Assembly (NCBI GenBank): GCA_029953675.1
Contig: JAMWBK010000006.1
Coordinates: forward strand, 434,001 to 498,000
Reading direction: 5' to 3'
From: Rhodosorus marinus CCMP1338
Taxonomy: Eukaryota > Plantae > Rhodophyta
DNA length: 64,000 nt
Below the pieces are notes generated by a model that ran no database searches, was not told the DNA's origin, and saw only the letters and a list, made by a program, of their open reading frames with translations. The position numbers and the translations under genes are program-made. This document shows positions 7,935 to 60,726 of the stretch, one piece after another (positions within the stretch are counted from its first letter, which is position 1; every line of letters starts with the position of its first letter).

Positions 7935-9466
7935 GAAAAAGAAAAGAAAAATCCAAAGACCCCTTGGTTTAGATTCTTTTTCAATGTGATTTGCTGGATC
8001 ATACAAATCACCCTGAATATTAACTTTCTACCTAATAATTTCCCGTATTTCTGGAGGTATCTTTTTCCCCTCCTCAAAGAAACCATTTTCCATGCTGATT
8101 GACTAAGCAATTGAAAAACAAAAAAACAGAGCCCGAGTTCCAAAAAGGGGTAATTGATCAAAATTACCACTGGGGTAGATTGCCTTCTAAATTTTCTCCT
8201 TTATAGTGTTCTCAAATAGATACACCTTTTTTCCCAACACCCCCCTCCCTTCATCCTATTCCCCGCGCGCCCCCCCTCATTCAAAAAAACGACAAAATTA
8301 GATTTCCGTGGACGGGGGGACGAAAAACCAGAACAAATCAGCTGAAATTGAAGATCGGAAGGGCCAATCAATACTGAACGCATGGTGATGGTCTGCCCCA
8401 TCCATAAAATTTATATTTTTCCATTTATAGGGGCTTGCGCCCCTCCGGGGGGGGTATTTTCAGATCACCGTGTGTGTTTTTTTGAACTAATTTCTTCTGA
8501 CTGCAATTTTTTTTGGTGCCGCCTGTTCGTATTTTAGGTTCGATGAAAGGAAATTTAATTTGTTTCAGTAATAAAATCGAAGATACAGTCAATATATGAT
8601 GGAAATCTCGTAATAGTTTTATTATATGAATATAATTTATTTGTTTAGTTGGATAAATTGATGAAATTGACTTATTGAAAGATTCTTTCGATTCGGTTGG
8701 CGTTGTCAAGGTGTTCCACCACTTGGATCAGCTCATTAGCGCTGGGTGAACCACTGCTTATTTGTCATGTCTAGGACTGAATAAAATGGACTATCTAGAG
8801 TCTTGATGGTCTACTAATTCAGTATCAAGGGGTGACACTTAAAATATTGTATTTTTGAGGATGTTGGTGGGGATTTGCAACCGATGGGCTGAGGCGGCTT
8901 GCGTAACTCCTGTCAGGCCCCTCTCTCCGCGAATCCGGAGCACGTTGGAACTCTGTCCAGACGGTGGAGGGTTCTTCCAACTGAAGGGCTTCTGCGCGAC
9001 CTCCTCCAAGAAATACCAGGCAAGCCCAAATCCCTCCAGAGGGCAGAGCTCTTCCATGAATGACATTGCCATCTCGAATATTGAAGACTTTATTCCGTCG
9101 TGGATTCGTGGCACATTGTCTACTTGGCGCAGCTGTAAACACTCCAGAGGACAATTTTCCTAGTGCTAGGCAGCGTCAGACCGCATCTTGGTAGATTCGT
9201 AACTGTTCAACATTTCGTGTGACGACAGCATCATGTGGACTGGGGTTTCCTGTTGTCCAGGTCCTGATCACCGCAGTGGTCAGTTTGGAACAAACGTCAA
9301 GGAATTTCGGATTCAACCGCACCAGCATGGAAGATTTTGCTCCGCTGGTTGAAGTTTCTACATGGCCTCGTGTAGCACGGTCTAAACCGACTTTGTGCTA
9401 GATCCTAGCATAAATGAGGAGGAATCGCATGGTGCAACCGCTGCGCGTGGGTGTCATCCAGGGATC

Positions 9467-14960: not shown

Positions 14961-16437
14961 TGAATACAATCAACTAGAAGAAAACCGTCAACACCCGAAA
15001 AGGAGAAACAGTTGTACTTGCGTGTACTCGTAGAGAAAGACTCCTCCAATGAGCGACAATCGTCTTATTCAGTCATTCACTATTGGACACAGTTTTGAAT
15101 AAATAACGAATCAAGTCTCATCAATCTCCACCCACTGACAACGACGGTTCGTAGTCCGAGGGATCGGAGGACGGCATAAAGATGCTTAGAGGCCTTATTT
15201 AATTTCTGAATACAAGTATTTTCTGTTTCCAGGGCCCTACGTTTGGTCGTAGTGGAGAAACCGGTATCCCCTTTTTGTACGCTAATTCACAAGAGTTCTA
15301 TCCATTCACATGTAAGAAATCTCTCGACGGCAGTGATCGCAGAATTATCATCTAAAATACTGCTATATTAACATAGAATGTGTGAAATAATATGCAGTCT
15401 AATCTATCTGTTGCTCATCTGAGGATTTCATCATCAAACAAAAAGCTTCCACGCGTCGACGGATCCAACCACACAACCAGCCCCCCCCCCTTTCTACCTG
15501 TAACATCTACCTCACCAAGTCCACCTGTTTCCCACCCCCTCAGAAACAAAACGTCCAAACGCTTGCTTTGACTATAAAAAAACCATAATACAAAATCCAC
15601 CCACCGTACAAATTTTTCATCTCGCCCTGGTCAACTCCTTTGGATCAAGCACATCAAAACATAACTGAAAAACAAAAATATCTCCTTCACTTTTATTTCT
15701 AAAAAACAATATTCGCTAACCCCCCTCCGTCCCCGCAATCCTCAAGATCAGCCAAACCCATCCAAAACCGCTTATGCAAAACTCAAAAACGTAAAAAGGC
15801 GAAACCTGTCAAGAACCATTCTCCGCATTTTACCCCCCCTATGCGCCTTGGGTATACTTTTAGAGTATACCTTAAATTGTAGGGTATTGCCACCGGGTTT
15901 AGAAATAATGTAAAAAAAAAAGCTAGTACCCGTCTAAGTTTTTCCGAAGATTCGCAATATCTGAGGGAATCCAGGGGCCCCACGTCGATGTCGTAAGGAC
16001 GCGTGGGATTGTTTCATTTGATTATCGGATTTGAGTAGATTGAATTTTGCTGTTTTAGGGATTGAATACGGGATCGGGTGGAGATGGTTTGTACATCAGA
16101 TGGGATGGGTGGGTTTGGAAGAGGTCGGATAGTAAAATTTTGGGTTTTTGTGGGGGATTTTTTTTTTTTGACGGGTGTGATTTCGTGTTCAGTCGCGTGT
16201 AATTTTTTTGGTTTGTTTTGGGAACTCTGGTTTTTGGATTTTTGCGGTAGGGGGTGCGTATGTTGGTGTTTTTTTTTGGTGTATAAAGGTTGTCTGTTTG
16301 TTGAAGTATGGAAGATCGCGTGACCTATTGAGTGGCGGCTAGGGGGAGGGTTTGGAGGAAGTCAAACTGGGTTGGTAGGTGGGGGAATATAGTTTTGTTA
16401 ACCTGTTGAAAGAGAGTGCTTCTGTGTTTGTGGAAGG

Positions 16438-18775
16438 ATGGATTCTGCTTTTGTACCGACGACTTCTTTCGTGCGTTCTCAGCGCAGCAGTGCGATCTCC
16501 GGCAACAGGAGCGGCTTTTTGGCGCCTGCGGTTGGCAGAGTTGCCAGGCCGGTTCACTCCAACGTGGTGAAGATGGTTGCTCCCGCGGCTGACGGGAAGC
16601 TGGCGCAGACCGGTGACGAGCTCGCCGACAAGTGCATCAACTCGATCAGGTTCCTCGGGATTGACGCCGTCGAGAAGGCCAAGTCCGGACATCCTGGTAT
16701 GGTTATGGGCCTGGCTCCGACCGCCTACGTCCTGTATGATAAGATCATGAAGTTCAACCCCAAGAACCCGAAATTCTTCAACAGGGATCGGTTTGTTCTG
16801 TCGGCTGGACACGGCTCCATGCTTCAGTATGCTCTCATGCATCTTTACGGATACAACTCGGTTTCGCTGGATGATATCAAGCAGTTCCGTCAGCTTGGAT
16901 CTGTCACCCCTGGCCATCCGGAGAACTTTGAGACTGAAGGAATTGAGGTCACCACTGGTCCGCTCGGACAGGGTATCTGCAATGCCGTCGGTCTTGCAGC
17001 CGCGGAGGCTCACCTTGCCGCCACCTACAACAAGCCCGACGCTAAGATCGTTGATCACTATACCTTTGCGATCATGGGTGACGGATGCAACATGGAGGGT
17101 ATCTCTGGTGAGGCGTGCTCGCTTGCGGGCCACTGGGGGCTCGGCAAGCTTATTGCCATCTACGATGACAACCACATTTCCATCGACGGAAGCACTGATA
17201 TTGCCTTCACTGAGGACGTTGGCAAGCGCTTCGAGGCCTACGGCTGGGAGGTGATCAATGTTGTGAACGGAAACACCGATCTGGGTGCAATTGAGGCTGC
17301 TATTGAGCAGGCCAAGAAGACCACTGACAAGCCCACCATGATCAAGGTCACGACTATCATCGGATATGGCTCCCCGAACAAGGCTGACTCGTACGCTGTT
17401 CACGGTGCTGCTCTTGGAGCGGACGAAGTGACCGCCACCAGAGAGAGCCTTGACTGGGACTATCCGGAGTTTGTCGTTCCGGATGAGGCTCAGGAGCAGT
17501 TCGCGAAGAAGACTCCTGAGGGAGCTGCGATTGAGGAGGAGTGGAACGCAAGCTTTGAGGCGTACAAGGAGAAGTACCCTGAGCTCGGTGCTCAGTTCGA
17601 GTCCGTTGTGTTGAAGAACGAGTTGGGCTCTGAATGGGAACCTGCTCTCAAGAAGATGGGAGAGGAAACGCCCAAGGCTGCTACCCGCCAACTGTCGAAC
17701 ATTGCATTGAACACTATTGCACCAGTTGTTCCGAGTTTGATTGGTGGATCTGCAGATCTTGCCTCGTCCAACCTGACGATCATGAAGGGATACGGAGACT
17801 TCCAGAAGGCTACACCGGAGAACAGGAACTTGAGGTTCGGAGTGCGTGAGCACGCCATGGGAGCCATCTGCAACGGCATCGGTCTTCACGGCTCAGGCTT
17901 CATCCCGTACTGCGCAACATTCTTCATCTTCACTGACTACATGCGTGCAGCCATGCGTATGTCTGCCCTGTCCCAGTGTGGTGTAATCTACGTTATGACT
18001 CACGATTCCGTTTTCCTTGGAGAGGATGGGCCTACCCATCAGCCGATTGAGCACCTCGCGTCTTTCCGGGCCATGCCTAACATGAACATGTACCGACCAT
18101 GCGACCCGACTGAGGTAGGCGGATGATGACGTTCACACTGTATGACTTCTTGAAACTGAATCAGAACTTTCCATTCGCTTCATTCAGGTTGCTGCCGCGT
18201 ATGCAGTTGGTGTCGAGTCGAGGACGACCCCGACGACTATCGCGTTGACCCGCCAGGCCACCGCCAAGTACCCGGAAGCGAGCTTTGAGGGTGCCAAGAA
18301 GGGCGGCTACGTGCTGACTGACAATACTCCAGAGGGAGAAACCCCGGACATGATCTTGATGGGAACTGGATCTGAGCTGCCTCTCTGCTATGACGCCGCC
18401 GAGGCAGTTCGGGAGAGTGGAAAGAACGTGAGAGTCGTCTCTCTTCCATGCTGGGAGAAGTAAGTTTTCAATCCTTCCCAATTCGCTTCGCTGAGGAGGA
18501 CGTCATGTGCTGAGAAACGTTGTGAAAATACTTTTTTTTGCTGTATCTTCAGATTCCTTGAGCAGGACGCCGAGTACCAAGAGTCCGTGCTCCCGGCTGC
18601 GGTGCCGATGAGCAAGAGGCTTGCTGTTGAGGCTGGGTCTCCGTTCGGCTGGGGAACGTTCGCCGGCAATACGATCACCATTGACAGGTTCGGAATCTCC
18701 GCTCCAGGCAACGACATCGCGAACTACTTTGGCTTCACAGTTGAGAATGTCACCGAGACTGCCATGAAGTTGTAA
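16438..18775 (+). CDS. TKL: Plastid transketolase, 3 exons (16438-18114, 18188-18459, 18553-18775)
   Basis: [15 protein letters not shown], ThDP motif [24 protein letters not shown] and DRFGISAPG; red-algal-type transit peptide MDSAFV..; introns restore the frame exactly. Confidence 0.97.
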
Positions 18776-23609: not shown

Positions 23610-24740
23610 ACCTCAGTCAAGTCCTGTTGACTCTCGCACCTACCGCTCTTGCATGCTAACTGGAGAAAGCAGAACAGTAAATAAGCTATGAACGATACCA
23701 ATGCGACTCCCAAAAGGCCACTCCCAGTCATGAAGGAGGATGATTACAAGCAAAAGGCTTGCTGTAAGGCTACTCTAGCAGCCCTTGATCAGCGCAAGGT
23801 GTGACTGGCTTCGCAGTCCTTTTTCCCAACCACCGGCACGCACACAAGTCCTTCATAGCTTGAAAAACTAAGCCTCGTGCTCTGCCAGAGGGGTTACACC
23901 AGTCTGAGCTTACGTTGACATCTGATGACGAGTATCGATCAACAAAAATTTGCAATATCAGGGAGTGCTTACATCAATCTGAGCCTAAGCTGGCATCTTT
24001 TGATGACGAACGATCAGTACGGAGACCAAGAACTAGAACATCCCGGACCTGAGTTTCAATCCCAATCCCTAAAGTCTTTCAAAAATACATATATTGAAAA
24101 ACATCAGTCAATATAAACGCTTATATTGACTGGAAATTTTATTCAATTATACATGTAACTAGGACATGCAGTTAGTGCATATAAGCATAATTATTAAAAT
24201 AAAAGGTTATTTTCCACTAGTTACAATCGCGTTATTACATGTAGTTTATGGGGGTTTACGCTCGAGCTTTAGTCGAGATGGCATACATGTAATTATGTTC
24301 ACGCAATCGAGCAGATGACGTTTTTTTGGTATTAATCAGAGATATTGCGTCACGTAAATAGTGTCCAATACATGCAATTTATATAGATTAAGGAGGAGAA
24401 TGGTGTGTTTTGAGCGGTTATGAAGAGCTCGGAAGTGACGGGAAGGTGGTGAGCGGCGAGCGGAACGGAGGCCGGGAAGACCGTTTAAGGTTGCGTGGCG
24501 TTGAATTGAGAGAGGTAGGATTGGAGAGTATATCGTGAATGGAGCGGTTGCTCCCGCTGAGTTGATTTAAAGAGGAAGGGCTTGGAGTTGACCGGTTTTT
24601 GGATAACTTGAGTTGAGGTTAGCTTCTGGAGTTTTGGATAGATTGTTTTGGGGGTGGGTGGAGGTTTCACTCTTTGAGGGTTGTGAGAAGCGCGGTTAGT
24701 TAACTTTCTTGATTTCAAGCGTTTGAGCTTTGTAGTAAAT

Positions 24741-34992: not shown

Positions 34993-36407
34993 CTAACCGA
35001 AGAACTTGTATATTGTGGTCTGTGTTCGTGTTTCCCCGGGTTGCAGTATGATGCTCGGGAAGTCTGGGAAGTTGGTCGCATCCACAGCGCCGCTGGCTTC
35101 CAGCGCAATCCCGTTCTGATAATAATCGCCATTTCCAGGGCCGGTGAACATTTGGAACCCAATCTGGTCAGACCAAACCTAGGAGAAATGTAAAGGAGCG
35201 GAAAGAGTCAGCGCCAAACGCAGAGAGTACAGAATGACATTTCCGAGTTAATACCTCCAGTTTCTGGCCGCTTGGCGGATGATAAATTGTGACCATCAAC
35301 GACATGTCGGTATTGTCGCCCATGAAAAAGTTGTCGAACCTGTTCGCACGTTTCACGGAGTTCATCACAAGTATGAGGGAGCATCCTTGAACTTATGGTG
35401 AGGATATTCCAAAACTACAAAAGGAAAGGGCTTGTAGTCGAGTCAGTCTCGCACGCAAGCTTACCCTTCAGCATTGAGATCTTTTACAAGCTTGCCGCCC
35501 TCCGTGAAAAAGTCCTCTCCAAGTTTGGTGAGGCCTCCCGTAGGAATCAAGTCTGCGTCAACGTCCATGATGTTTTCGACGCTATCCATTGGATATAAGT
35601 ATGTGGAGATGAGCAATTAGTGCATTGGTACCATCGAATGGTGAATGGTCTGTGCTCCATACCCAAGCTTGAAACCATGTGTCTGAATGACGTTGTCCTT
35701 GCCCTCCGCAAAAGTGAAGTAAGAATGATTGGTCATGTTCACTGGAGTCGCTGCATCGATTCCTGTTGAAGTGTATACAACGGACAGGCTGCTCTCATCA
35801 AGCGTATACCTGTGTAAATCGAGGAATCGACAACGAAACCAGTGAGCGGGAAAATGATGACACGAAAAGCAAGAACAGGATCGAAGCATCAAGCGTACTT
35901 TGCCTTCGCGAGGACAGATCCAGGGAATCCCATCTCACCAGTTGGTGAAATTCGGCTGAATTCAACTTCTAGATTGCCATCTGCATTGAGTCCAACCTTT
36001 TCAATAGCCCAGATCTTTCCATCCCAACCGCCGGGTTTCTCCCCACCATGGAGAGCATGCTGCGCCTTGGTGGTCACAGTATAGGTAACACCGTCCAACA
36101 AGAACTTCGCGTTCTTAATTCTGTTCGTTACACGTCCAATAGAAGCTCCAAGGTAAGCCGGATCGACCTCATATGCTGCCATGTTGTCCAGGGACAAGGT
36201 AAGTTCCTTATCTCCCTTGGTCAGGGTCCGCAGCCGAGCTCCATAGGTCATCAACGTCATTCCCATCGTTCCGTTGTTCAACTCCAAAGCTTCAACTCGA
36301 TCTCCGTCAGATGTCATCCCACACCACGTCCGCTTCATCCACTTCCCTCCTCCAAGATCAACCGGGTCAGCAAGCGCCAACGCGCCAGTAATACTTTCAC
36401 TCGACAT
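34993..36407 (-). CDS. GALM: Aldose 1-epimerase (galactose mutarotase), multi-exon
   Basis: YLGASIGRVTNRIKNAKF, HALHGG, GFPG, TPVNMTNHSYF, and final exon Q.FTG...NGIALEASG..DATNFPDFPSIILQPGE. Confidence 0.92.
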
Positions 36408-36415
36408 CCTTACCC

Positions 36416-36435
36416 CACACACACACACACACACA
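36416..36435. repeat. (CA)10 microsatellite just upstream of the GALM start codon
   Basis: Directly visible; a shorter CA tract lies at about 36497-36509. Confidence 0.9.
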
Positions 36436-37891
36436 GGACAAAATCAATTCTCAATATACCCCTCCCCCCTCCAACAAATCAAAACAAGATCCAACCACAC
36501 ACACACACAAATACAAGCTTCTGCCAATGCCTCTGCTCACACCCTCTTAAGCCCCTCTTCGGATATCAGATCTTCAACCTCTCCTCACCTCTCTCTATCG
36601 CCAGTCCAAGAGGCTCCCTAACCCACCATACACACCACACGATCGGATCAGCAACCCAACAAAAAAAACCACCGGAAAGATACTTTTTTCGATTTTATTG
36701 CCTCCCAATCGACCCTTTTCCATTGTGATTGTTTCATATCGTTTAATTAATACAGTATACCGTTTATTTATACAATAAACAAAAATTATTAGCGGATTAT
36801 TCTCCAGATATTTGATATATATAGTGGGAATTACTCTATAATCTTCAGCTTATCAAATCGATCTCAAGTTTCTTGGATTGACTTCATTCAGTTTTGGGTA
36901 TTCTTGACTGATCTCAATTGCGGTGAGCGGTGGGTTTGGGCGAGTCGGGGACGATCGATTGCATCTGTGCGCTTGTGCGCTGGGCTGGCTTGTTCGGTTT
37001 CCGGCTGTTTCCGGAAGAGGAGTATTGGGGGATCTGCTTTTTCATCTTCGTTGTTCTGGACTAGTGTGATGCTGTCATCCGCCACGCATACCAATTTAGT
37101 GGGATTCATCCGTGTCTTGAGGGTTCCTTCCTGCTCGTTCAGGTGTTCACTGCCTCAATTTCCGCACCCAACCCAAGCACCCTCCTGAAAGCAGAGAGAA
37201 GAGAAGATACGTACAGTATGGCCGAGGTGGGCCCTTCAGCCTGCAAAATTAGCGGAGCTGAATTGCAATAACATGGGTTGCTGGTCTGGACTGACCGGGC
37301 CTGTGGATGCCTTGAGAATCTGCCTGCGCTCGGGTTGGCTGCCTTAGACTGTAGCTTCACTGTTCCAATGGCGCCCAAAGTCACACGAAAAAGCCTCGTT
37401 GCGGCAAAACCGGCCTCGGAAAGAAGGCAAAGTCCCGAGTAGAGCGATCCCCACCGAATAGTTTGTTCTGGAGCGTCTAGTAGCTGCATACTTATGCAAA
37501 CTGTATGCTTATGATCAACTCAAGCTGTGTGAGACGGGAACTTGCAGTGGCCTTCAAGTCCGTCCGATAGCCATCCAATTCTCTTCGTTATGTTGCGGCT
37601 TCCTCGCCCCGCGACGAATACCTCTGATCGAGTGATTTGCAAAGCTATTCTCTGTTCTGGACAACATCACAGCCGAGCGCATGGATTCAATTGAAAAGGT
37701 CAGTTCTCTTTATCAAGTAGAACACCAAGTACATGTAGGGGACCTGAAACGATGAAATGAAAATGTAGAAAGACATGGCTAGTCTGGAAACCAGAAGCTC
37801 GGCTTTTGTTTGTGAGCTTTGGATCTGAGTGCGTCTGTGAATAAGAAAATCGCGTGGCTTCCGATCAACTTGGAAGCGACTAGAAATACCA

Positions 37892-41277: not shown

Positions 41278-41719
41278 CCTCTCTATTGGTCCCAGGATGG
41301 GACCCAAAAAACCGTTATTCTCGTTGTCCCAGAATATACCCTTTTCCCTAACAACAACCTTTTTTATTTCTTAATGTGTTAATAAAATATAATGTTGGCT
41401 TTTTTTACAAAGTACGCTGTTATTATTAAAATAATACGAATATATCTGTATTGATTATTAAAATAATTTACGGGATAAAACAAATCAGGAAAAATTAGAA
41501 TATTCAATCACCAGTTTTGTATTTCGGATTTGATGACAACGTAGCTTTCTTACCATGAAAACTTTTTCGTGTTAGTGGTTAGCCTTGAGCGCTACGCAGC
41601 TCGTAATACAAACTAGGGAACGAGGAACAAACGCGTGCAAGCCAATGCGGCAGTAGTGAGGCTCGGCTAGCATGCTGCCATTAAAAGACACTGAGCCGGC
41701 GTAGGAGGACAAGATACTC

Positions 41720-47550: not shown

Positions 47551-48364
47551 CAACGCATAGCCAGATGACTGGAAGCGTCACATATTGTTTTGCTGTATTA
47601 AAAACAAATAGGTATAATTTCGAAGCGTCGCTTAGCTCTCTCGGGATAGGCGAAACAATTTTCCCCCTTTTTTCGTCCGTCTTGCCACCCCCTCAAATTG
47701 TTTTTTAATTGGAGTACCAGAAAACCGTTGGAGGCCGACCAATAAAACCGGGGGTACACCCTACCGGTGTGGAACGCGGGCCGCTAAGATAAACAAAGAG
47801 CCTCAAAAGTTTACTAATAATCAATAAACACCACTCGCCGCCTGGTCGCTCGAAAAAAAGAAAAATTCCGGTATACATCAATTCTCACCTTTATTCTTTC
47901 TTTTTTCGCAAGGTTTTTTGGGCGGGGCTCTTCCCCCTTATTTTGGAAGCTCCTTTTCTCAATCGCTCCTGCCTTCCACGGGGTTTCTTCGGCACCCTTT
48001 TTGCAACCCTTAAATTTATTGTATAAAAACAAGTTCGGGTTTTCCGCAAATTAGTTGTTCCGCTTTTTTTTATTAGCAGATGATATCCATCTTTTTTCTA
48101 AAGCTTTGCAAGTCCACGATCTGTTGTGTTGCGTTTTTTTTCTTGTTTTTTATTTCTCTGCTGAGTTTTCGAGGTTTTCGTTTGTCCGTTGTTGTTTTGT
48201 TTTTAGATGCTCTCATTGCCCTGTTGCATTTTTCTTGTGCAATGATGGAAGCTTTCGTGTTTCTTTGGGCCTTTTTTTGTGGAGTTTTTGACATTTTATG
48301 TGAGTGAACCATCCGCTTTAGTACCGTCTGGTATAAAGTAAATTTGGTAGGTGAGGGCAGAGGG

Positions 48365-48837
48365 GGGCGAAGGGGGGAGCGGAGGGTTGAAGGGAAGCGG
48401 CCTCTTGTTGCGGGGGGCGATAGAGAGTGTGCGTCTCTCGAGGTGTGAATCTAGTAGTGTTTGTTTGATTTTGCCTTGTTTCCGCGAACGAAAGAGGGAG
48501 AAAATTCCGTGGTTGTTTTGAGTGCTGTCAAGGTGTGATGTTGTGAAGTTTGACTTTGGATGTGGAGGAATTTTATATAGCACAGAGATGGAGATAAGGG
48601 ATTTACTTTGCAAGGAGACTGAGCCGCTGCCTCTCGATTCCAAGTGGGTTACGAGAAACCTGCTCGGCGAACGGGGAGATGTACATGAGTGGGAGGGAGT
48701 TGGCGAAAGAGCGTTCACGGCCGCGGAGGCTCTGCAGAGGCGGAAACGATCCTATCTGTGCCCCAAGTGCAACCAGTTGTACGGGACAAAAAGCTCTCTG
48801 ACAAGGCATCAGCGGGTCGTGCATAACCACGAGCGCC
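48365..48837 (+). repeat. Left arm of a 473-bp inverted duplication
   Basis: Reverse complement of 50736-51208; no mismatch found by eye; both arms give identical translations in the ORF track. Confidence 0.97.
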
Positions 48838-48980
48838 CGTATGCATGTCCCGTTTGCAACAAACGGTTTTCGTCAAAGAGCTGTGTCAAGAGGCACGCGA
48901 GAATACACGTGGCCTCGAACATGCGGTTTGCACTTCCAACTGTTCAGGTGCATGAAGTAGAACCTGGCAAACTGGCGTAG
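48588..48980 (+). CDS. C2H2 zinc-finger transcription factor (2 fingers, 130 aa)
   Basis: YLCPKCNQLYGTKSSLTRHQRVVH-NHERPY-ACPVCNKRFSSKSCVKRHARIH with a TGEKPY-like linker; N-terminal MEIRDLLC. Confidence 0.92.
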   Translation: MEIRDLLCKETEPLPLDSKWVTRNLLGERGDVHEWEGVGERAFTAAEALQRRKRSYLCPKCNQLYGTKSSLTRHQRVVHNHERPYACPVCNKRFSSKSCVKRHARIHVASNMRFALPTVQVHEVEPGKLA

Positions 48981-49599
48981 TGTCTATAATCGAAGCCAGT
49001 CTATTGACGAGAGATGGGAGGAAAGGTCATTGCATAGTCATTCTTAAAGAGGCGCCTAGTTGCGTAGCGTATTTAGTTCTTATCGTATCCTATGGATACG
49101 CTGGTGAATAGTAGACGTCGTCCCTCCCAATTTGACATCGTATCTCACGAGCAGGTCATCATTGATGGGAACTAGCATTAATAAAGTCGGAGTTGCACAG
49201 TTTGAAGATAAAACGTATCTTAATCAGCTCTCTGAGCTATTAAGCTAGTCTGCCTACCGTTTCACAGCTCGGATCGTATCTCGTCTCCTGCTCATGAGAA
49301 AACGAGATGCCTACCGGTTAAACATTCTATATGACGTCACATGAGTTTTAGGGTCCCCCGGTCTCGGTTTAGCCTATGGCCTCTGTTGAGGGGTGCACTT
49401 TCCAAAGGATTTCCGTCGCGCTTATCTAAAAGGGGAGGAATTTGATATACGTCGGAAACGTCGGTCTGGAAGAAATTTCATCGTTCTTTCGAAGTGAAGT
49501 GACAGGCAGTGGAATGGCAGTGGAATTCTGTGACCGATTTTAGCAAAGGTGATGATGGTAAGGTGGCCTGATGTGGTCACCGATCCATCAGTTGAAAGC

Positions 49600-50580
49600 A
49601 CGGAGCTACCATGGCAGAAGGCTACTGCACGAGCGTTAATCAGGTGTGTTGGAAATCTGTATGAGAACTATCATGCTCGTCTGTACCTCGAACACGCGAC
49701 GCCCGTTAGAAAGGAAAAGGATCGAGGCTTCCAACCGCCAGGCACTTAAAACCAACCCAAGCCAAGCGATTTGCCAAGCCTGGAGTAACAAAAAATGGCC
49801 TAGGAGAGCAAATGCTTCCACTGAGTCGCAGTGTAGTCCAACCCCTATGGCAAACTCAGCTACCATGCCACCGTCAAGAACTGATACTACAAGCCATGAA
49901 ACGAAAGTTATTTTCAACGTTTTCCACGAAGTATCTATTGCAACGCTTACAACACTAGTGCACTTGGACTCGGGGGCGTGAGGCAGTTGCTCAAATCATG
50001 CGCCACCACAAGGAGGTTAAGGAGGCTGTTGTACCAGGTGGCCCTCACGAATTTGAACATCCTGCAAGTCTCATAAACAGGTTTTCCCACAGGCCATGGA
50101 CGAATTCGGGTTCGTTCAGAGTTCAGAAACGGCTTGGCTTCGAGACAGTGCGATCGCGATGAAAATCACTAGCATCTCCTCTCTTCTTCCGTGGCTTTAA
50201 CCTCTGGTGTTCCAATGTGTCTTAGTCCTAGATGCCTGTTCTCTCTGTTTAGCGCAGCACTCCCCCATGGTGGTGATTTCTAAATAAATGAAGATGCATA
50301 CACTCAGCAAAACTGCAGTAACAACGTACTGTTTCATAAAAGTGGACCTGGGGCATGCCCCCCTTGTCCCAACTAAAGCAAGGCATGGACTTCAACCGTT
50401 TTTTGGGACATTGACAAACCATGTCGACGATTTCAACTTGCTAGTCCAGGTTCTTATGCCCCAATACTTGTCCTAATGCTTGATGTGAGGGTTTGCTCTG
50501 TTGCAGAAGGAGCTGAGGAGCTGGTCTGTTGTAGCCTGGAGAAAAGCTTCTGTCATCTCAAGAAGCAGTTCCATCTTTGT
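49600..50580 (+). mobile_element. Possible decayed hAT transposase with a BED finger, in the spacer of the inverted duplication
   Basis: ICMRTIMLVCTSNTRRPLERKR resembles the BED TSNLRRHL..KH motif; SLINRFSHRPWTN (S...D.WT), MHTLSKTAV (HTLNL.V) and VPT../WTST.F (PTRWNST) occur in the expected order but are fragmentary. Confidence 0.3.
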
Positions 50581-50622
50581 CATGAAATTTCAGTATCAAT
50601 AATTCATTTTTTATTAGGGTAT

Positions 50623-50985
50623 TCAATTTATTTTCATTATACGAATGAGTTTCAATATATTGTATTGTAGTTTTATTAAAGCATATGAGCTAAATGAGGC
50701 AAACTTTTTCATGAATATATAAAATAAATACTTCAGGCGCTCGTGGTTATGCACGACCCGCTGATGCCTTGTCAGAGAGCTTTTTGTCCCGTACAACTGG
50801 TTGCACTTGGGGCACAGATAGGATCGTTTCCGCCTCTGCAGAGCCTCCGCGGCCGTGAACGCTCTTTCGCCAACTCCCTCCCACTCATGTACATCTCCCC
50901 GTTCGCCGAGCAGGTTTCTCGTAACCCACTTGGAATCGAGAGGCAGCGGCTCAGTCTCCTTGCAAAGTAAATCCCTTATCTCCAT
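50623..50985 (-). pseudogene. 3'-truncated inverted copy of the C2H2 gene (finger 1 only, then an AT-rich-derived tail)
   Basis: Identical to the 48588 gene up to ..HNHER, then LKYLFYIFMKKF..MKIN* read from non-coding AT-rich DNA. Confidence 0.85.
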
Positions 50986-51208
50986 CTCTGTGCTATATAA
51001 AATTCCTCCACATCCAAAGTCAAACTTCACAACATCACACCTTGACAGCACTCAAAACAACCACGGAATTTTCTCCCTCTTTCGTTCGCGGAAACAAGGC
51101 AAAATCAAACAAACACTACTAGATTCACACCTCGAGAGACGCACACTCTCTATCGCCCCCCGCAACAAGAGGCCGCTTCCCTTCAACCCTCCGCTCCCCC
51201 CTTCGCCC
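50736..51208 (-). repeat. Right arm of the 473-bp inverted duplication
   Basis: Reverse complement of 48365-48837. Confidence 0.97.
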
Positions 51209-51532
51209 GATTGGAAAGTGGTCTGTCTTCCTTGATCTTGGGGCATATTCTGGTGCAGGATTGGGACATTGACGATTAGTAAAACGACATCTTTGTTAGT
51301 ACGGTTTACTGTATGTACTGTTGTGGGTCTTGACTTTCGCTGAGGAGGATGAAAATTTCAAGGACAGCTGTTTGTTGAACTTACGGGGATAGTTAGCGGC
51401 TGCGGTGGGATCGAGGATGACTATCTGTCTGTTCCCACTCTGGAGGTTCTTGGGATCTGATCGTTTTGAAATTTCATTGTACAGTATCCGATTTTCCTTT
51501 ATGTTTCTGAGGATGTTATCTTTTGAATTGCT

Positions 51533-52553
51533 ATGAAGGATCGAAAGTTACCATGGACGTCCGAGGTGGTATCTCGGTTGAGGAGGGTTGGACTGGGCGA
51601 GTTTCTGTTCGTGCTGTTGATATTGACACTGCTGATTGTGACTTTTCGAGGCGTACAATTGAAGAGGATGATCGCGAATAGACCTCGGGCAGCGCATTTT
51701 GCAACACGGGTTATCGGTCGGAAGATGGACGTGCACGCCAGAGTCCCGGGAGCAGAGGTTTTGGCTCAGTCTTATGCCGGTCGAATCATCGTTTCTGAGA
51801 AGCATAAGTTCATCTTCTGCCCGGTCCCAAAGGTCGCTAATTCGAACTGGAAATATCTCATTAGAAAGATTGAAGGCGCAAAGGACTATATGGATCTAAC
51901 ATTGGCTCACGATCAGGACACAAGCGGGCTTCGGTAAGTGTTGGATAGTCGCATCGCAGTTCTGAACAAGGATTCTTAAGCGAAGGCCCTTTTTGTTTTT
52001 CTGCATGTAAAATAGCTATTTGAGCGACTACTCTCCTGAAGAAGTAGAGTATCTTCTGTACAAGTCAGGATATCACAAATTTGTGTTTGTGCGGGACCCC
52101 TATACACGACTTCTGAGTGCGTATATGGACAAATTAGTGAACAAGTATGAGAGCAAGGAGGAGTATCGAATTTGGCTGGGGAAGTTGTACGACTGGAAAC
52201 ACGTACGGGAATCTGATTTCATCAACGATGCTCGCCCGTCATTCCAAGCTTTTGTGGATGAGCTCCTGAAGCAGGATCCAGATCGAATGAATGAACATTG
52301 GATGCCCCAGGCGTATGTTTGCGGGTTTGGCGAGGTCCCATATGACTTCGTGGGTCGGTTTGAAAACATCGAACGGGATGCTAGTCGTGTTCTGCAGAAG
52401 ATAGGAGCTCAGGATGAGGACTTTCCCTCTCAAGAACAGATCGGATTCGCAGCAACAGGCTCAAGTCAACTTGTTGATGAGTTCTACACACTAGATATCA
52501 TGCTCAAGGCCAGAATCCTGTACGATGTGGACTTCACCATCCTTGGCTACTGA
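51533..52553 (+). CDS. Golgi-type carbohydrate sulfotransferase, Sulfotransfer_2 family (CHST8-14/HNK-1ST-like), 2 exons (intron 51934-52015)
   Basis: Type II TM (FLFVLLILTLLIVTF); 5'-PSB IIVSEKHKFIFCPVPKVANSNWK; 3'-PB FVFVRDPYTRLLSAY; HWMPQ...C; YDFVGRFENIERD; LYDVDF.ILGY. Confidence 0.92.
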
Positions 52554-56976: not shown

Positions 56977-57794
56977 TCCAAACGCAAAAGAGCAGATACA
57001 GATGAACTGCATCAATCCATCCGCTCTACTCTCTCAAAGAACAGCTCTCTTGCACAGACCCAATAAACGAAAGAACAAAAAACCAGAAGATCCTTCTCTT
57101 AACAGGAAGAAGCAATGGAAAAAAGAAGAAGGGGACGATAAAGCCGCGCTTCCAACAGAATCGTTCTTCATCAATAGGAAGCAACCATCACGTTCTCCAT
57201 TCTCATCATACCATACCAAAACGAACAAAAAAATGGCTTGTCTAAAAGTTTCCATAATATAAATCCTACCACATAATTTCCTCGTTCTCTCGTGTTTTAA
57301 ATTTTACTGAATATCATTATTTATCTGTGTAACGATCACCAATTAAAATCACGCTTCATTTCATACAGAGAGTAAATTTTAAAGTTTTATGTTCTAAAAT
57401 ATAATATGAATAATATAAATAGATAAGAACAAAGACGAAGGTCGAAATAATTTCGTTTTTTATTATATTTTTGCAAGCTTTCACTGGAGAACGTTTTTCG
57501 GTCTAGCATACAGTCGAGAGTGACGATGACTTGTTCTCCATCGGAGCAAGGACAGGTCCGTATCAATCTACAGATATGCTCTTCTGCATCACTTTCTGAT
57601 CTACCCGGTGAATGCCTCACATTATTTCCGTCCCGGGTGGTTCTCAAAAGCTCGTTGCGCTCATCTCACGAGGGAGGAGGTTCCGGAACTGACCGGTGGC
57701 GTTTGCGCAAGCGGGCCGGGGTTCCGCAGAAGATCAGAAGGTCGGGCTCAGGTGAAATGGAGTTAGGATCACCAAGCTGCGTTTACGGCTTTGC

Positions 57795-59498: not shown

Positions 59499-60726
59499 AG
59501 CTCAGGCGAGGAAACCAATAGGCACAAAACCAAGACGTTACTGTTCCACAAAAAAACACCAAACTACGACACACCGCCCTTTCCACCAAGTTAAACCACA
59601 CCCTGCATCAACCTCCCCACTTAAAAACTAGTCCATCTCCTGAACTACCAACAAGACAAAGCAAAGAAAACTAAGTATCAAATACCTCTCCAAAGACGCT
59701 ACAAAGACAATCCTAAGACGCTCCTAAGCTCATGAAACGCTCCTCAGATGCTCTTAAGACGCACATCGCCCTCTGACGAGCTCTCCAAGATCGGCTGGGC
59801 CGAATTCCTCCGGTAAGCCAGCAAAAAGACAGGACAATAAGGATATTTCCTTTCCCTTCTTAAAGCGTCATCTATATTCAATCTTTTTAAATGACTGAAC
59901 ATATTTGTTTCATGAATAATATATTTAAAGTCATAATATAGATTGAAATTAGGAGTGACACTTATCTAGGTTCCATACGCAATCTGGCTAGCGATCATGA
60001 AAGCGTCATAAGTATTCAGTCTATATGAGCTCATAGTTTTCATATAATATATTAAACAACACGAAACAGATTGAATTTGTAGATGACGCTTATCTAGACA
60101 ACAAAGATTTGTTTTTCCGTACCTGATTACAGCTGCACAACGGACTATCAAAAAAGCAGAAAGTCAAAAAAATAAAGATATCTGAGAAAGCTAGTTTAGT
60201 ACTTGAAATATAGTGTACAATAAAATACGAAAGTATGTCACGGTCGGCGACGTGGGTGACGAATAAAAACTATTTAAACCTACTAATTGTATTTTCCAAG
60301 TAAATATCAAGTTGCTTTGTGGTATTCAGTTTATGCAATTATTTCTATTCTAACGTAAAAATATATAAACATCAATATTTTGACGAAAAAAAATTGAAAT
60401 TATCTCACAAAGAGACAATAATCAAAATAATGAAAATTATTAGAAGATGGCCAAAATTTCAATAAATTCAATAATACGGGTTTCATGGGAGACGTTTTGT
60501 AAATACGGTTAGAACAAGAACTGTTGATGCAGGAATTTTGTTTTTTTTTCTTGAATTTTTTAGTCAGAGTGGGAGTTGCTCTTCTTAGTGTCGTAAGAGG
60601 CGGTTGGGACGGGAGTGACGGACTTGGTTGGAGTGCGTTGGTTAGGGGTTGACCGATTGATGGTATGTACGATTTTGTTTTTATTCGTAGACTTGTGTAG
60701 AAGTATATAAACAGGATTTAATACCA

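Follow-up and report, generated by a model that had tools for sequence, protein, structure and literature searches.

Why should the front of an intact gene be repeated, without a mismatch and in the opposite orientation, a short distance downstream of the gene itself? The question is raised by a nuclear locus of Rhodosorus marinus CCMP1338, a unicellular red alga; it lies in a stretch of 64,000 nucleotides (hereafter the window; its position 1 is at about position 434,001 of the record) of contig JAMWBK010000006.1 (2,472,615 bp; NCBI assembly GCA_029953675.1). There, a small C2H2 zinc-finger gene is accompanied by an inverted copy of its 5' part, for which an earlier note, made from the letters of the window, had considered a self-silencing hairpin or a truncated competitor protein. 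The answer favoured by the present analysis is that the locus is probably a young interstitial inverted duplication, i.e. a neutral or slightly deleterious repair scar that has left a promoter-less gene fragment beside its intact parent.

Geometry of the inverted repeat

The structure is made up of the following elements (window coordinates).

48365 to 48837, plus strand: left arm (original), with 223 nt of 5' untranslated region (UTR) and codons 1-83 (N-terminal region and C2H2 finger 1)
48838 to 50735, plus strand: spacer, with finger 2 and the stop codon followed by 3' UTR or intergenic DNA, in the orientation found in relatives
50736 to 51208, minus strand: right arm (derived copy), a promoter-less inverted duplicate of about mRNA position +12/+21 to about +485/+494, unannotated as a gene
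48588 to 48980, plus strand: intact single-exon gene for a protein of 130 amino acids (aa) with two C2H2 fingers (Pfam zf-C2H2, E=5.8e-11, two stretches), annotated

The two arms are exact reverse complements of each other over 473 nt (100% identity), as established both by a repeat search and by a script-based string comparison, and the 1,898 nt that separate them are single-copy in the window. Chance origin of a perfect match of this length is ruled out (about 4^-473 per position pair), and no second direct or inverted repeat of 40 nt or longer occurs in the 64 kb. The borders are sharp, with unrelated 20-nt flanks on the outer side (TGGTAGGTGAGGGCAGAGGG versus AGACAGACCACTTTCCAATC) as well as on the inner side (CGTATGCATGTCCCGTTTGC versus TGAAGTATTTATTTTATATA). 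A target-site duplication is absent, the outer flanks ...GGCAGAGG and GATTGGAA... sharing no bases. Each arm consists of a G/T-rich leader of 223 nt, the ATG (48588; mirrored at 50985) and codons 1-83, which include the entire first C2H2 finger and end with HNHER and the first base of the Pro codon of the linker. These results confirm what the earlier note had described, namely mismatch-free arms around a 1,898-bp spacer, a leader, ATG and first finger in each arm, a right copy that stops at the HNHER linker and a pair without a target-site duplication. They also bear out its view that the 5' part of a C2H2 zinc-finger gene has been duplicated as one discrete, inverted block, and the structure looks real.

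The original arm was distinguished from the copy with the help of three sequences from relatives: a contig from Logan sample SRR32518360 (L002) and two transcript contigs from JGI sample 3300016967 (L003 and L005). All three are collinear with the CCMP1338 sequence across the equivalent of 48837/48838, i.e. from the left arm into the spacer, and L003 and L005 are also unbroken across the equivalent of 48364/48365. Because of this collinearity, the left arm and the spacer are regarded as ancestral and the spacer as not inverted. The right arm is, on the same comparison, a derived copy with novel junctions on both sides, as had been proposed from the window itself. A staggered-break inversion was considered as the origin of the structure and rejected, since the spacer has the same orientation in the three relatives' sequences.

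A recent event is the simplest reading of the arms, because they show 0 differences in 473 bp as against a divergence of 16-23% from the nearest lineages. The claim that near-perfect identity means a very recent event stands to that extent; its certainty does not, since the identity could instead reflect gene conversion between the arms or, less likely, polishing with short reads (three rounds of Pilon).

The parent gene and its promoter

The only relatives found for the 130-aa protein come from Rhodosorus, at 94% and 86% identity (5.8 billion protein clusters; transcriptomes and Logan assembly). Of the codon differences between the coding sequence (CDS) and that of L002, 20 are synonymous and 9 non-synonymous, and for this reason the gene is considered real and under purifying selection. 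The parent gene is, as far as these comparisons indicate, intact, conserved and still functional. Its product appears to be a genus-restricted small C2H2 protein, whose 55-residue N-terminal region matched no Pfam family. Two full-length zinc-finger transcripts, L003 and L005, are present in one and the same sample and are 88% identical over 906 nt, from the 5' UTR through the 3' UTR; the pair could represent two paralogues, divergent haplotypes or a mixed culture, and CCMP1338 has one annotated copy.

One further element upstream of the gene bears on the extent of the copied block.

48332 to 48337, plus strand: TATAAA motif in a T-rich upstream region (motif scan), outside the arm and 33 nt before its start

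The composition changes at about 48340, from T-rich sequence with a guanine plus cytosine (GC) content of 0.30-0.38 to a GC content of 0.56-0.66. The 5' ends of the relatives' transcripts fall close by, that of L003 at the equivalent of 48344 and that of L005 at about 48352, and put the beginning of the mRNA 12-21 nt or more ahead of 48365, where the arm starts. Since these transcript starts and the TATAAA motif all lie upstream of the arm, the copied block comprises transcribed sequence only, without the promoter. From the copying of the leader, the earlier note had argued for a possible convergent transcription of both arms. This argument is weakened, as the leader is 5' UTR and the T-rich upstream region with the TATAAA at 48332 was left behind; the right arm would consequently need a promoter from its new surroundings.

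The insertion site

The surroundings of the right arm contain three elements of interest.

50536 to 50735, no strand: AT-rich island, likely terminator and insertion site (GC about 0.22; AATAAA on the plus strand at 50723-50728 and on the minus strand at 50610, 50627 and 50672)
50623 to 50985, minus strand: truncated open reading frame (ORF) of 120 aa, with residues 1-83 of the zinc-finger protein and a 37-aa tail from the AT-rich island
51533 to 52553, plus strand: sulfotransferase gene, 312 aa, one intron (annotation; Pfam Sulfotransfer_2), divergent from the right arm

The inner junction of the right arm (50735/50736) lies 12 nt after the AATAAA at 50723-50728, where the AT-rich island, about 200 bp long, has its distal edge. 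Between the outer junction (51208/51209) and the sulfotransferase gene there are 325 bp, the upstream region of this gene and the one candidate from which the right arm might draw a promoter. Eight AT-rich islands occur in the window (8498-8712, 24050-24249, 36676-36895, 41305-41577, 50536-50756, 57241-57523, 59823-59972 and 60246-60566), about one every 8 kb, with lengths of 150-320 bp and a GC content of 0.19-0.27, the average of the region being 47% GC. Being one of eight comparable islands, the island at the junction is taken as native DNA, and it is probably a terminator. The block 50570-50735 has no significant match elsewhere in the window, and its interpretation as foreign or organellar filler was rejected as unnecessary in view of the eight similar islands. 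At least some of the islands stand just past the 3' ends of genes, and they may be terminator or nucleosome-free elements.

The right arm had also been suggested to encode a truncated one-finger protein. The ORF of 120 aa does exist; as a protein it is doubtful, being unannotated and absent, as an exact sequence, from a collection of 15 billion proteins, and its one zf-C2H2 match (23.2 bits) falls under the Pfam cut-off of 25.2 bits.

Origin of the right arm

The most probable origin proposed for the copy is a break or a stalled replication fork at the AT-rich island, the repair of which would have produced the inverted copy. In a fold-back or template-switch route, the 3' end at 50735 would prime on its own strand at 48837 and copy down to 48365, and the copied end would then be rejoined at 51209. 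Capture of a locally derived fragment by end joining would be an alternative route to the same product. The result would be a promoter-less fragment, in effect a piece of a pseudogene, which by default would be neutral or slightly deleterious.

The geometry of the locus is consistent with such an origin. The left arm is the native locus and the right arm a nearby inverted copy on the same chromosome, as in fold-back inverted duplications, and the spacer of 1,898 bp falls inside the range published for these (766-70,466 bp, median 3,428 bp, in 21 sequenced human cases; PMC3907307). In yeast, too, breaks have been found to receive short templated inverted insertions, most of them of 5-34 bp (PMC11724301). 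With fold-back duplications and templated insertions (PMC3907307; PMC11724301; PMC10622511) the locus shares a short normal-copy spacer between the original and the inverted copy, the orientation predicted for intrastrand priming on a resected end, the sharp borders and the lack of a target-site duplication. In structural terms, it can be placed as a small interstitial member of the class of fold-back and templated inverted duplications, i.e. as an ordinary kind of event.

Several points weigh against a repair scar. Classical fold-backs are of kilobase to megabase size and accompanied by a terminal deletion, whereas the present copy is of 473 bp, interstitial and with both flanks kept. The borders of the copy lie near the 5' end of the mRNA and near the likely poly(A) site, which random break repair does not predict. 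Because both borders adjoin transcript landmarks, an RNA-linked or transcription-linked origin is possible, and the coincidence may point to transcription-linked fragile sites or to an RNA-linked route. The nearest relatives end at the equivalent of 50429 or are too divergent to show an empty site or fold-back microhomology, the three novel junctions are known from one assembly, and the neutrality of the copy is an assumption. Fold-back priming would be expected to leave inverted microhomology of 2-8 bp, or inserted bases, where spacer and copy meet, and any such microhomology would by now belong to the arms.

Two further lines were tried in this connection. Back-priming of the RNA with run-off copying would explain both borders; it is weakened by the relatives' transcripts, which start 12-21 nt upstream, and is kept with a low probability. 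A comparison with an empty site by way of the sulfotransferase was abandoned, as the only homologue of this neighbour (P0007, 59% identical) is carried by an adapter-capped RNA-seq contig (L004; Logan SRR22824282) that is too divergent upstream. The first 22 nt of this contig (L004:1-22, CAGACGTGTGCTCTTCCGATCT) are a remnant of an Illumina adapter, left in the public assembly.

A possible self-silencing hairpin

Of the alternatives to a repair scar, functional self-silencing survives best, and even so we consider it unlikely. In this explanation, read-through of the zinc-finger mRNA or transcription from the sulfotransferase side would give a double-stranded RNA (dsRNA) of about 470 bp, from which small interfering RNAs would lower the expression of the gene itself, and the structure, acting in cis, would amount to a newly born hairpin-RNA or proto-microRNA locus. 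The earlier note had expected a read-through dsRNA of about this length, and folding of the RNA agrees: in the predicted structure of 48365-51208 all 473 arm bases are paired, with a minimum free energy of -1573.9 kcal/mol as compared with -718.0 kcal/mol without the right arm. This predicted duplex of 473 bp, perfect throughout, speaks for silencing, as does the descent of the arms from a protein-coding gene to which they are 100% complementary, a property of hairpin-RNA genes. If termination fails at the AATAAA at 50723, the resulting transcripts would contain the two arms and form the 473-bp perfect hairpin, which would hide its own 5' UTR and start codon and be untranslatable, and which would be a substrate of Dicer if the alga has RNA interference (RNAi). 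A relative's transcript covers at least 84% of the spacer, up to the equivalent of 50429, and because it ends 306 nt before the right arm, a transcript of both arms needs only modest read-through. Dicer-like and Argonaute genes have been reported as lost specifically in the Cyanidiophyceae (PMC9812998), implying their retention in other red algae, and the inverted-duplication model for the birth of microRNA (MIR) genes begins with structures of this kind (PMC3237417).

However, no promoter was copied, and the AATAAA and the AT-rich island stand immediately before the right arm, so that normal termination would exclude it from the transcript. The suppression of a conserved gene under purifying selection is more likely to be harmful than adaptive, and the event appears too young for selection. 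Nothing on RNAi or Argonaute in Rhodosorus was found in the literature. To our knowledge, RNA silencing has never been studied in the Stylonematophyceae, the class of red algae concerned.

Natural inverted-repeat silencers include PAI1-PAI4 of Arabidopsis, Mu killer of maize, Lgc1 of rice, the CHS I locus of soybean and the hairpin RNA (hpRNA) genes of Drosophila. These are gene repeats born by rearrangement, the read-through hairpin RNA of which silences the parent gene or its paralogues; transcription reading through from a promoter close by, small RNAs or methylation, and a phenotype are all demonstrated for them. The present locus is like them in being a rearrangement-born inverted repeat of gene sequence and unlike them in that a poly(A) signal precedes the second arm; by this analogy it may resemble the hairpin silencers in potential, and it is not classed as a member of them. 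A comparable likeness holds for the plant model of MIR birth (Allen et al. 2004), in the outline in which PMC3237417 summarises it: a segment of a protein-coding gene is duplicated in inverted orientation and gives a long foldback, perfect at first and fully complementary to its founder. The locus would represent the earliest stage of the model so outlined, with the differences that one arm is the functional founder gene itself and not part of a separate pair of copies, and that the organism is a unicellular red alga.

A possible assembly artefact

It is rather improbable that the inverted block is an artefact of assembly or polishing, made by chimeric or fold-back reads of Oxford Nanopore Technologies (ONT), by NextDenovo or by local reassembly in Pilon. 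ONT template-complement chimeras are spacer-less palindromes of whole reads, and they do not give a 473-bp copy behind 1.9 kb of unique spacer. The structure found here has a unique spacer of 1,898 bp, is no spacer-less palindrome, and stands in the interior of the contig, about 482-485 kb from the start of the 2.47-Mb JAMWBK010000006.1, rather than at a contig end. The genome was assembled with NextDenovo from ONT GridION reads with a 6-kb size selection and polished three times by Pilon with 100-bp paired Illumina reads from a 550-bp library (PMC10250338). Reads selected at 6 kb exceed the entire structure of 2.8 kb, and the borders near the 5' end of the mRNA and just past the poly(A) signal are not sites that software would favour. 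An artefact would nevertheless fit the dependence on a single ONT-based assembly that was polished three times with 100-bp reads, and the perfect identity of the arms, as possible copying by software; the junction also borders on DNA very rich in AT, in which poor Illumina coverage is frequent. The risk from polishing is limited, because the 473-bp arm is shorter than the 550-bp insert and most read pairs are anchored in unique DNA. In the protein collections searched for a second assembly, the exact 130-aa protein occurs on the NCBI contig only and its 90% cluster is without fragment members; two control ORFs of the window (16438-18126 and 36048-36728) are not on record and were therefore uninformative about a second CCMP1338 assembly.

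A possible autoregulator or invertible segment

A more speculative and decidedly improbable proposal is that the locus is a stage-zero cis-hairpin autoregulator, or a flip-flop, in a red-algal lineage unstudied for RNA silencing. Leaky termination may then set the level of the 473-bp cis-hairpin, with translation blocked in cis and, where Dicer is available, feedback in trans. Recombination between the arms might also flip the spacer, exchanging the full-length and the one-finger products.

A recombinational flip-flop or one-finger competitor in its own right is very improbable. Recombination of the arms would invert the spacer, whereupon the native promoter would drive the 120-aa protein and the full CDS would come to lie on the promoter-less side; the outcome would be an on/off or dominant-negative switch, with gene conversion keeping the arms identical. 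The layout would permit this, as finger 2 and the stop codon are in the invertible spacer and the 5' UTR and ATG are common to both arms, and the perfect identity is such as concerted evolution would maintain. Yet no recombinase was found in the spacer ORFs by Pfam or among the called neighbouring genes, none of the ten ORFs of spacer and arms having a Pfam domain. The assembly shows one orientation only, the relatives give no sign of the arrangement, and the product is unpromising, its 37-aa tail being translated AT-rich intergenic DNA and its single finger below the Pfam threshold. Invertible segments flanked by inverted repeats, and at-risk inverted-repeat motifs (PMC10164571), have two identical inverted arms around a short unique segment, as seen here; homologous recombination can invert the segment between such arms, and hairpins can form from them in single-stranded DNA. 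A wide spacer lowers the formation of secondary structure (PMC10164571). Unlike these invertible segments, the present locus has no recombinase and was seen in one orientation in the assembly.

A mobile element (terminal-inverted-repeat transposon or foldback element), in which gene sequence merely happened to fall within terminal repeats of 473 bp flanking a core of 1.9 kb, is scarcely conceivable and was rejected as effectively refuted, because the core holds no transposase or other domain, a target-site duplication is missing, and the supposed element is of native origin, its left repeat and most of its core being the native gene and its 3' UTR, collinear with the relatives, with no further copies in the window.

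Significance of the locus

If confirmed in reads, the locus would be a clean and datable natural case of a small inverted duplication born beside its intact parent. Inverted duplications with perfect arms are the proposed raw material of hairpin-RNA and microRNA genes and are almost never seen before they decay. The arms would then offer a simple test for dsRNA processing in Rhodosorus and the Stylonematophyceae. If the copy is only a neutral scar or a mutation of the culture line, its chief use would be to mark the strain and to warn annotators against calling a gene for the truncated ORF of 120 aa.

Neighbouring genes, spacer and 3' UTR

The annotated neighbours of the locus are an amylase, the sulfotransferase, a PfkB kinase, an MFS transporter and PMT. 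Elsewhere in the window, at 16339-18126, long ORFs of 562 aa (plus strand) and 516 aa (minus strand) overlap on opposite strands in its most GC-rich part (GC 0.50-0.55); no gene product on record corresponds to the plus-strand ORF of 562 aa as read.

In the spacer, scans for Rfam families and tRNAs were empty, and a hidden RNA gene or tRNA was rejected on these grounds. The part next to the stop codon is set apart by its conservation.

48981 to 49250, plus strand: proximal 3' UTR block of about 270 nt, strongly conserved, with AATAAA at 49180

Identity in this block is 85% with L002 and 82% with L003, as compared with 92% and 87%, respectively, in the CDS and with 69% further downstream. This stretch of the 3' UTR includes perfectly conserved runs of more than 25 nt, e.g. 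GGTCATTGCATAGTCATTC and AGCGTATTTAGTTCTTATC. A conserved RNA structure in the proximal 3' UTR was rejected, the covariation term of RNAalifold being 0.

Beyond this block, L003 is collinear with the CCMP1338 sequence in segments (48344-49350, 49723-49838, 50095-50296 and on to 50429). The spacer blocks 49367-49719 and 49836-50092 are missing from L003, and the first of them is at least partly present in L002. The edges of the two blocks fit GT-AG introns on the plus strand better than on the minus strand. The zinc-finger mRNA may thus carry two introns in a very long 3' UTR, lineage-specific insertions or deletions being the alternative.

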